A DNA stretch of 63,568 nucleotides, counting the filler, from Lenisia limosa (Eukaryota > Protista > Breviatea), in assembly GCA_001655205.1 (NCBI GenBank). It is 10 parts of 10 records of this genome, joined end to end, with 100 filler letters (N's around TTAATTAATTAA, not from the genome) between each part and the next. Parts side by side here need not be neighbours in the genome. Positions count along the whole stretch, not along the records: positions 57,409 to 59,676 come from LPNZ01003190.1; positions 59,777 to 61,971 come from LPNZ01006260.1; 8 more parts are not named here. One strand, given 5' to 3'. A model generated the notes under the pieces. It was not told the DNA's origin and did no database searches. It worked only from the letters and a program-made list of their open reading frames with translations. Position numbers and translations under genes: made by a program. Of the stretch, positions 59,501-61,971 are shown piece after piece. Numbering within the stretch: position 1 is the stretch's first letter; each line of letters opens with the position of its first letter.

Positions 59501-59826
59501 TCAGCAACAAAGTTCGATGACTTTTCTTGTTTCTTCGTACAATCCCGTTCAATTAGCCTCCTTTAACTCCTGTTTTTGAAAAGTCGTCAAATTTTTTTCT
59601 GTTCCCCCGCTGTTTCATCTCTAAGCAACATTCCTCTTATAGCAACATCCTCTTATAGCAACACCCCCCCCCCCCGNNNNNNNNNNNNNNNNNNNNNNNN
59701 NNNNNNNNNNNNNNNNNNNNTTAATTAATTAANNNNNNNNNNNNNNNNNNNNNNNNNNNNNNNNNNNNNNNNNNNNAAGTAGTAATTAGGAGACAAAATA
59801 TACCTTATCTTGAAGTTTTAACAAAA

Positions 59827-60117
59827 ATGAAAAATAAATATATTCCATCCCATATAATTGATCATCCTTTAATAATGTTTCCTCCCAGCCTAAGGAGAGA
59901 AGAAATTGTTAAAGCTATTGATAATAGAAAAGGAAATCAACCAACCCATTGGATTAATACAATTAATATGGAAGAATTTTTTGATGATCAATATGTTGAG
60001 TTGGATAAAGAGTCTCCAGACTATAATGAAGAAATAATTCAATATTTAAAGAATGAAGAGACCTATGAAAAAGAATGGGGGAATTATTGGAAAAAGTTAT
60101 ATCCAAATTCCTCTAAA
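59827..60117 (+). CDS. Intronless AT-rich hypothetical ORF A (virus-like), copy 1, cut by an N gap
   Basis: MKNKYIPSHIIDHPLIMFPPSLRREEIVKAIDNRKG..WGNYWKKLYPNS; with copy 2 gives a ~116-aa protein ending RILYENFEE*. Confidence 0.65.
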
Positions 60118-60367
60118 TNNNNNNNNNNNNNNNNNNNNNNNNNNNNNNNNNNNNNNNNNNNNNNNNNNNNNNNNNNNNNNNNNNNTAAATTTATTTTTTA
60201 TCGATTAATTTATATATGTATATAGATTTATTTCTAATTAGTAAATGTATATCCCACCTTTCTGATCACTTCATATTATACTATGTATATATATATATAT
60301 ATATCGATTTATATATCAATTTATATAAAATATTTATTCGTGAACAATGAACATGAANNNNNNNNNN

Positions 60368-60611
60368 TAAAAATCCATTACACTGGATTAATACAATTAA
60401 TATGGATGAATTCTTTAATGATCAATATGTTGAGATGGATAAAGAGTCTCCAGACTATAATGAAGAAATAATTCAATATTTAAAGAATGAAAAGACCTAT
60501 GAAAAAGAATGGGGAAATTATTGGAAAAAGTTATATCCAAACTCCCCTAAATTAGTTGATGAGGTTAAGAAACAAAGATATAGAATTCTTTATGAGAATT
60601 TTGAAGAATAG
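60368..60611 (+). CDS. ORF A copy 2 (3' part), diverged duplicate
   Basis: HWINTINMDEFFNDQYVEMDKESPDYNEEIIQYLKNEKTYEKEWGNYWKKLYPNSPKLVDEVKKQRYRILYENFEE*; differs from copy 1 at several codons. Confidence 0.65.
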
Positions 60612-60940
60612 AGGTAGAGGTGTATAAAAAATATAAATTTATTTTTTGTCGATTAATTTATATATGTATATAGATTTATTTCTAATTAGTAAATGTACAT
60701 CCCACCTTTCTGATCACTTCATATTATACTATGTATATATCGATTTATATATCAATTTATATAAAATATTTATTCGTGAACAATGAACATGAACATATAT
60801 AAGGATATAATATTTCTATAAACTTTATTTCAAATCATAGAATGTAGAATTTAGAAATGTTAGGATCTTCCTATAGGAAATAATTAAATTATTATTTGTT
60901 CTCAACTAGTAAATGAATATTCCATTCTTCTGTTCACTCC

Positions 60941-61276
60941 CTAAACATGAACTATCTTCATAATACTACTTAATTCCTCATCCAACTCCTTAAGTTTTTC
61001 TTCTTTCAATGTCTTATACTGATTTTTTAGTTCAGTGTCTTGTCTAAAGATACATAACAGTCTTTTTAAGTCATCACCTTTAATCATCTTATAATTCCCA
61101 TCTACTGATATGCAATAATCTAAATAAGTCTTATTAAATTCATTTTCAAATCGTTTTATCTTCCTGATTGCTTTTACCTTTGACCTATACATTTTAAATT
61201 TTCCATATCCATTTATTACAGGGGTTGATATTGTGTTCAAAATTACAACTATAATTAAAATTGTTAATGGTTCCAT
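60941..61276 (-). CDS. Intronless 111-aa ORF B with a hydrophobic N-terminus (virus-like)
   Basis: MEPLTILIIVVILNTISTPVINGYGKFKMYRSKVKAIRKIKRFENEF..ELKNQYKTLKEEKLKELDEELSSIMKIVHV*; complete ORF, divergent from ORF C. Confidence 0.65.
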   Translation of the reverse strand: MEPLTILIIVVILNTISTPVINGYGKFKMYRSKVKAIRKIKRFENEFNKTYLDYCISVDGNYKMIKGDDLKRLLCIFRQDTELKNQYKTLKEEKLKELDEELSSIMKIVHV

Positions 61277-61354
61277 CTTTAGAACTTAAAAAATAATTGT
61301 CGTGTTTGTTAAAACTTTTTCATAAATATTTTTTCATTATTTTATTTTTCATAA

Positions 61355-61627
61355 ATGACTACCAAGATTTGTAAGACATGTCAAGAGGAAAAAGATATTT
61401 CAAACTATTACGCCAATAATAAAGAGAAAACAATTTTCAAACCAAATTGTAAAACATGTATCAAAAATAAAATTATTGTTCCTAAGGATTTGGATAATAA
61501 GAAATGTAAAACCTGCCAAACCATTCTTCCAGTTGAAGATTTCTATTTCAATAGTAAAGCTAAGAACACTCGTAAACCAAATTGTAAAAAGTGTATGAAA
61601 TCACTGAGGAAGAAGAAGAAGAAATAA
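61355..61627 (+). CDS. Intronless 90-aa ORF C with two CxxC..CKxC zinc-ribbon repeats and a basic tail (virus-like)
   Basis: KICKTCQEEKDISNYY..KPNCKTC and KKCKTCQTILPVEDFY..KPNCKKC, then KKKKK*; the repeat type is common in small ORFs and HNH/EndoVII N-termini of phages, Polinton-like viruses and giant viruses (recalled). Confidence 0.75.
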   Translation: MTTKICKTCQEEKDISNYYANNKEKTIFKPNCKTCIKNKIIVPKDLDNKKCKTCQTILPVEDFYFNSKAKNTRKPNCKKCMKSLRKKKKK

Positions 61628-61744
61628 ATGAATGAAAATTTAAGATGAAAAAAATATGGCTGTTTTTTAAAAAGTTTATGAAAAAATTTTTTCATTATTN
61701 NNNNNNNNNTCATAAATATTTTTTCATTATTTTATTTTTCATAA

Positions 61745-61971
61745 ATGACTACCAAGATTTGTAAGACATGTCAAGAGGAAAAAGATATTTCAAACTATTA
61801 CGCCAATAATAAAGAGAAAACAATTTTCAAACCAAATTGTAAAACTTGTATCAAAAATAAAATTATTGTTCCTAAGGATTTGGATAATAAGAAATGTAAA
61901 ACCTGTCAAATCATTCTTCCAGTTGAAGATTTCTATTTCAATAGTAAAGCTAAGAACACTCGTAAACCAAA
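61745..61971 (+). CDS. ORF C copy 2, truncated by a linker
   Basis: Near-identical to 61355-61581 with a few substitutions (e.g. QTIL vs QIIL) and the same upstream AT-rich leader. Confidence 0.7.

Follow-up and report, generated by a model that had tools for sequence, protein, structure and literature searches.

A Lenisia limosa scaffold is probably a fragment of a divergent Polinton/Maverick-type virus-like element

Introduction

To which kind of element do small, compact, AT-rich genes belong when no hallmark gene lies beside them? The question is raised by scaffold LPNZ01006260.1 of the Lenisia limosa assembly GCA_001655205.1. It occupies positions 59777–61971 of the window, that is, of the whole 63,568-nucleotide (nt) stretch analyzed here, filler included, in which ten parts of ten records of this genome are joined end to end. 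Positions without a contig name count along this window. A first-pass annotation had read the scaffold as a fragment of an uncharacterized endogenous viral element, either Polinton-like or of giant-virus origin, and had left its class unassigned. Here we describe its three small genes, referred to as open reading frames (ORFs) A, B, and C, and a near-identical metagenomic contig on which ORF C is followed by an integrase gene and a DNA polymerase gene. The scaffold is likely a fragment of a multi-copy Polinton/Maverick-type virus-like element, of which it would represent the accessory-gene arm.

Results

Linkage to an integrase and a protein-primed polymerase

The scaffold is 2195 nt long, including 87 N across three gaps, and has a GC content of 24.3%. 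Under the standard code it holds three kinds of ORF. ORF A and ORF C are each present twice on the plus strand, and ORF B is present once on the minus strand. A word-based protein search returned ORF B at 100% (P0002) and 73% (P0003) identity and ORF C at 97% identity (P0001). All three sequences come from a single ENA metagenome assembly, ERZ3820729, for which no paper was found in the literature. The contig L001 of this assembly (554 nt) is 98.7% identical to 60851–61404. The contig L002 (6036 nt, 28% GC) is, over its positions 1–342, 96.6% identical to and colinear with 61350–61699, the intergenic spacer included. Both have a high k-mer coverage of 113–168x.

Past ORF C, L002 carries three genes on the same strand, with spacers of 70–85 nt. 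They are, in this order, a 174-amino acid (aa) ORF that belongs to no family, an rve integrase, and a family B DNA polymerase of the protein-primed type (pPolB). The integrase (400 aa, L002 956–2158) matches rve PF00665 above the cut-off (2.5e-11), and its conserved acidic residues align with those of its relatives. The polymerase ORF exceeds 1270 aa, and its C-terminal half is of the protein-primed family B, as seen from matches to PF03175 (8.9e-51) and to a PHROG DNA polymerase (1.7e-31). Polintons are defined by the presence of both pPolB and a retrovirus-like integrase (PMC5499653). Because ORF C and its spacer are colinear with a contig bearing both genes, we assign the scaffold to the Polinton/Maverick class. 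The first-pass annotation had proposed to walk outward from the scaffold to hallmark genes, and such a walk does reach pPolB and the integrase, on L002 rather than in the window.

A third contig, L003 (k-mer coverage of 22x), is a second, related element variant in ERZ3820729. Its positions 1–738 contain a diverged pair of ORF C and ORF B paralogues (73% aa identity for ORF B), followed by a DUF4116-repeat gene (PF13475, 6.7e-17). The DUF4116 gene stands where the spacer toward ORF A would be. The literature on DUF4116 was uninformative.

Relatives of the integrase

Searched in full with HMMER against 1.84 billion representatives, the L002 integrase has only distant relatives, the best at 39% identity (E 1e-27), and 280 matches fall below 1e-10. 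The loci of its relatives are Polinton-like. Locus L007 has the order A32 ATPase, double jelly-roll major capsid protein (DJR MCP; PF21738, 7e-42), a gene combining DUF5679 with a phospholipase A2 (PLA2)-like domain, rve integrase with a chromodomain, and pPolB, and thus has the integrase-to-pPolB order in common with L002. Locus L088 (16.2 kb) encodes a DJR MCP, a PLA2-like protein, rve, and pPolB; locus L025 combines an A32-like ATPase with rve and pPolB; and in locus L005 the rve gene adjoins a faint adenain-like protease match. Morphogenetic genes (DJR MCP, A32 ATPase, and adenain-like protease) were found only beside these four integrase relatives, all of them distant.

The 80+ Polinton-like loci contain nothing related to ORFs A–C or to the 174-aa gene. 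The same holds for IMG/VR, for JGI metagenomes (searched with ORF B), and for GTDB (searched with ORF A), with the sole exception of L004, an IMG/VR phage HNH endonuclease whose N-terminus resembles one unit of ORF C. The searches of IMG/VR and Polinton sets that had been recommended for ORFs A–C at the outset hence gave this single phage relative of ORF C and nothing for ORFs A and B. That the scaffold derives from an uncharacterized virus-like element of the Polinton kind is supported by the colinearity with L002 and by the gene content of the loci of the integrase relatives. ORFs A and B are orphans.

Three features of the related loci were observed in addition. At least 25 of the 80 fetched loci (L007–L086) have, directly upstream of the integrase, a conserved gene of 170–200 aa that combines a DUF5679 zinc ribbon at the N-terminus with a PLA2-like domain (for instance, L007 4608–5204). 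L025 encodes, at 2175–2621, a protein with a TATA-binding-protein domain (PF00352, 2.3e-17). The N-terminal halves of pPolB in L007 (6648–10424) and L025 (9122–12526, minus strand) give weak Endonuclease_7 matches, and that of L025 has a His-Me finger-like C/H motif. No His-Me/Endonuclease_7 motif was found in the L002 polymerase.

Gene integrity and scaffold redundancy

Compact, uninterrupted ORFs in an AT-rich contig had been the starting observation, and they hold up. The ATG-initiated ORFs of the gap-free block 60368–61699 measure 111, 90, and 69 aa. Their lengths lie beyond chance: among 1000 dinucleotide-preserving shuffles of the block, 0.1% attain 111 aa, and none yields a second ORF of at least 90 aa. 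The GC content is 26–28% in the ORFs and 15–22% in the spacers. The three genes contain no internal stop or frameshift and are interrupted solely where the assembly has gaps or the piece ends. All three are real and intact. The genetic code is standard, because among the conserved ORFs of the piece and of L002 each of TAA, TAG, and TGA is used as a stop; for the same reason a ciliate code was rejected, which merely extends the frames into low-complexity sequence.

ORF A copy 1 (59827–60118, plus strand) comprises the first 97 codons from the ATG and then runs into gap 1. Copy 2 (60368–60611, plus strand) comprises the last 80 codons and a TAG stop, its 5′ part being lost at gap 2. By colinearity of the two copies, the full length of ORF A would be about 116 aa. 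They are 95% identical over 57 common codons, with four synonymous and five non-synonymous differences. ORF C is complete at 61355–61627 (plus strand, 90 aa). Its second copy lies at 61710–61971 (plus strand), which is 99% identical to 61320–61581 and comprises the upstream region and the first 75 codons (61745–61971) before being cut by the piece end. The copies of ORF C differ mainly at synonymous sites.

We then inspected the three gaps. Both flanks of gap 1 (67 N) are colinear with the second copy, where the equivalent stretch is 81 nt long and includes the ORF A stop. A 132-aa ORF A frame reading across gap 1 is therefore an artefact. Gap 2 (10 N) is non-colinear: the 3′ spacer end of copy 1 lies on one side, and the middle part of ORF A copy 2 lies on the other. 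Gap 3 (10 N) joins the spacer 3′ of ORF C to a region lying 35 nt ahead of the start of another ORF C copy. This join is also non-colinear, since the spacer of L002 runs into a different gene rather than into a second ORF C. The flanks of gap 3 have a 13-nt AT-rich string in common, which plausibly created a false path in the assembly graph. Between gaps 1 and 2 lies a redundant small contig (60186–60357), a 95–98% copy of the noncoding spacer 60634–60793. A similarity of 95–99% reaches the edge of every gap, as expected of redundant variant contigs. Most likely, the element exists in several copies, and the additional ORF A and ORF C sequences are variant contigs of it that were scaffolded together; the piece thus holds three distinct genes rather than five. 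That ORF A and ORF C are truly duplicated in tandem is less likely, given the similarity up to every gap edge and the divergence of L002 after ORF C. Of the gene layout first described for this scaffold, the compact genes remain, while part of their apparent density is due to redundancy.

The redundant spacer copies (60273–60327 versus 60734–60763) differ by a 12-nt length change in a (TA)n microsatellite. This difference is consistent with distinct genomic copies or alleles.

ORF C, a tandem zinc-ribbon protein

ORF C has a predicted isoelectric point (pI) of 9.8, 8 Cys, and 26 Lys plus Arg residues. The two K-x-C-x-x-C…(F/Y)…P-x-C-K-x-C units and the lysine-rich tail noted at first sight are present, and the two units can be aligned with each other. 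Against PHROG endonuclease VII/HNH families, ORF C matches the N-terminal zinc modules only (1e-11 to 7e-9). It matches Pfam Stc1 (PF12898) with 23.4 bits (E 8.9e-5), under the gathering cut-off of 24.8, and PDB profiles of Hpy99I and Stc1 (2LUY) weakly. With an AlphaFold model (predicted local distance difference test, pLDDT, of 70), the top PDB match in Foldseek is the tandem zinc finger of Stc1 (2LUY; E 0.018). Matches in BFVD are HNH endonucleases and zinc-finger proteins (6e-5 to 1e-3, ca. 30% identity) from pithoviruses, Tunisvirus (marseillevirus), Bodo saltans virus (klosneuvirus), medusaviruses, and Clandestinovirus. The earlier impression that the CxxC repeats are virus-like is thereby supported, as they match N-terminal modules of phage and giant-virus HNH endonucleases. 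No beta-beta-alpha-Me (His-Me) nuclease domain is found in ORF C, whose 90 aa leave no residues for one, and there is no NCBIfam match. In ORF C, the zinc-ribbon module that viral HNH endonucleases carry at their N-terminus stands on its own. It may act as a zinc-dependent DNA-binding accessory protein that arose from the DNA-targeting module of these enzymes.

Two further relationships of ORF C were considered and rejected. For its units and the DUF5679 ribbon found ahead of the integrase in many Polinton-like loci, hhalign gives a homology probability of 3%. ORF C-like motifs are absent from the N-terminal half of pPolB in L002, and the true His-Me motif of L025 is unrelated to ORF C. The tail of ORF C is variable: in the window (61600–61627) a lysine run is followed by TAA, and in L002 (255–278) a shorter K/E tail is followed by TGA; the aligned DNA differs by two small indels.

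ORF B and ORF A

ORF B (61276–60941, minus strand) encodes 111 aa with a pI of 9.3. Its hydrophobic N-terminus, which had been noticed before, is real and maps to a helix of residues 3–21 with a mean Kyte-Doolittle value of 2.18; the remainder is basic and predicted to be helical. ORF B is under purifying selection: the ratio of non-synonymous to synonymous substitution rates (Ka/Ks) against the 73%-identical homologue P0003 is 0.16, and the comparison with L001 gives four synonymous and no non-synonymous changes. The predicted model is helical and of low confidence (pLDDT of 44), too poor for a fold search. A match to the PBCV-1 capsid protein P15 (8H2I) is not significant (E 0.5), NCBIfam has no match, and no relatives occur in JGI metagenomes. 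ORF B is probably a small membrane-anchored helical protein.

The ORF A protein is acidic (pI of about 5) and rich in Trp and Tyr. Its two copies were searched separately, each as it stands. Family, structure, and homologue searches, NCBIfam included, were all empty, and no relative was found in 185,579 prokaryotic genomes (GTDB). Candidate assignments as a flap endonuclease, DUF6161, or DUF5677 were discarded, as every match had an E value above 0.05. ORF A may be an acidic, lineage-specific accessory protein.

Spacers and upstream motifs

The convergent ORFs A and B are separated by a noncoding spacer of 329 nt (60612–60940; 22% GC). It has no open frame on either strand and no RNA family or tRNA, and no inverted copy of it exists in any locus examined. 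The spacer region contains two copies of a motif of about 45–50 nt (60674–60723 and 60894–60943) that are 74% identical, and a further copy is found in the redundant small contig (60226–60275). The spacer 3′ of ORF C (61628–61699) is colinear with L002 279–342 and ends 20 nt before the start of the 174-aa ORF of L002.

The divergent ORFs B and C are separated by 78 nt (61277–61354), and this region has a ATTATTTT-type motif on each strand, located 14–20 nt ahead of either ATG. Counting both strands, the piece, L002, and L003 contain the octamer ATTATTTT 12 times, and eight of these occurrences sit 12–27 nt before an ATG. Six genes are preceded by it, namely ORF B, ORF C, the 174-aa gene, the integrase, pPolB, and the DUF4116 gene. 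The upstream sites of the form ATTATTTT(T/A) lie in window 61277–61354, in L002 330–360, 930–955, and 2200–2226, and in L003 500–528. The ATTATTTT(T/A) motif looks like an element-specific promoter.

Discussion

The question posed by this scaffold, to which class its genes belong, is answered with good but not full confidence by its colinearity with L002. The real gene order would be ORF A (rightward), the 329-nt spacer, ORF B (leftward), the 78-nt divergent promoter region, and ORF C (rightward), and beyond the position of gap 3 it would continue with the 174-aa gene, the rve integrase, and pPolB. Other copies of the element would be the source of the duplicate ORF A and ORF C sequences, the scaffolder having strung variant contigs together. 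Each small gene would form a compact transcription unit of its own, driven by the AT-rich upstream motif. The element would replicate by protein-primed synthesis and integrate through its DDE integrase, as is established for Polintons.

Several points weigh against this assignment. No hallmark gene lies within the window, and the link to such genes is a 350-nt colinear overlap with a metagenomic contig of another sample. Capsid, ATPase, and protease genes, terminal inverted repeats, and a host junction are not seen for this lineage, the contigs at hand being without ends or host flanks. ERZ3820729, in which ORF B and ORF C were found, has no counterpart of ORF A; ORF A is therefore the gene least certain to belong to the element, and it may lie outside. 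What is proposed here on the functions of ORFs A, B, and C draws solely on composition and on resemblance to known domains.

Alternatively, the scaffold could stem from a free or integrated virophage of the mavirus type. The integrase and pPolB would then be accompanied by a capsid set of virophage kind, and a giant virus would read the gene promoters. Mavirus-like elements are also AT-rich and encode rve and pPolB. The AT-rich motif is followed by TCTA directly before the ATG in three of eight genes (ORF B, the L002 integrase, and the L003 DUF4116 gene), and the high k-mer coverage of L001 and L002 in the metagenome would suit a virophage as well. However, TCTA in three of eight short AT-rich upstream regions is just weakly above chance, the closest integrase relatives reside in loci with a Pfam DJR-like MCP and pPolB, which are typical of Polintons, and IMG/VR holds no relatives. 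We regard a virophage as unlikely. There is a similarly slim chance that the scaffold represents a deep, unsampled mavirus-/Polinton-like lineage whose ATTATTTT…TCTA promoter would be read by a giant virus and whose ORF C would be a nuclease-less DNA-binding factor derived from the targeting modules of homing endonucleases.

The genes could also come from an AT-rich contaminant or an organelle, being either cellular or carried on a plasmid, such as a linear one encoding pPolB. The scaffold is a separate piece of 2.2 kb with no link to the host, linear plasmids of the mitochondrion or the cytoplasm encode pPolB and are likewise compact and AT-rich, and ORFs A and B are without viral relatives. 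Yet L002 has, directly upstream of pPolB, a DDE rve integrase that groups with those of capsid-encoding elements. Scans of the piece for tRNAs and Rfam families found none, rRNA included, and the empty searches of ORF A in prokaryotic genomes and of ORFs A–C in NCBIfam equally disfavor this origin, which we consider very unlikely. Scarcely credible is the giant-virus half of the initial proposal, a genome fragment or integrated segment of Nucleocytoviricota: it would agree with AT-rich, compact, intronless sequence, with the pithovirus, marseillevirus, medusavirus, and klosneuvirus origin of the best structural matches of ORF C, and with the DUF4116-repeat gene adjoining the ORF B paralogue in L003, but the linked polymerase is protein-primed (PF03175) and stands beside an rve integrase, which is the signature of Polintons and virophages, no core gene is found in the piece or in L001–L003, and the zinc-ribbon module is no class indicator because it is equally common in phages. 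The Polinton half of that proposal is the one upheld by L002.

With the Polinton/Maverick assignment, a class is given to a virus-like scaffold in which no hallmark gene is visible. The apparent tandem copies around its gaps are best explained by scaffold redundancy of a multi-copy element, which matters for annotation of the source genome. The Polinton/Maverick group would gain a divergent lineage with a distant integrase and four lineage-specific small genes; the understanding of how such elements work is unchanged by the finding.

Compared with known systems, ORF C resembles the N-terminal modules of viral HNH/endonuclease VII proteins and Stc1 in having two CxxC…CxxC units with a central aromatic residue. 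It differs from the HNH/endonuclease VII nucleases in consisting only of the tandem ribbon and a lysine tail, with no nuclease domain. Mavirus and endogenous mavirus-like elements (EMALEs) are alike in the rve plus pPolB module, the AT-rich genome, and a short AT-rich promoter-like motif, sometimes with TCTA, before gene starts; they are unlike in that the present lineage has no relatives in IMG/VR, and the motif resemblance is weak. From the Polintons/Mavericks the lineage is set apart by an integrase at most 39% identical to any representative searched and by ORFs A, B, and C and the 174-aa gene, which are without counterparts in the Polinton-like loci, while the DUF5679+PLA2-like gene that precedes the integrase in many of those loci is absent from L002. 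What it shares with the Polintons/Mavericks is an rve integrase gene immediately upstream of a large pPolB on the linked contig L002, in the same order as in L007, together with compact intronless genes and the presence of multiple sequence-variant copies.

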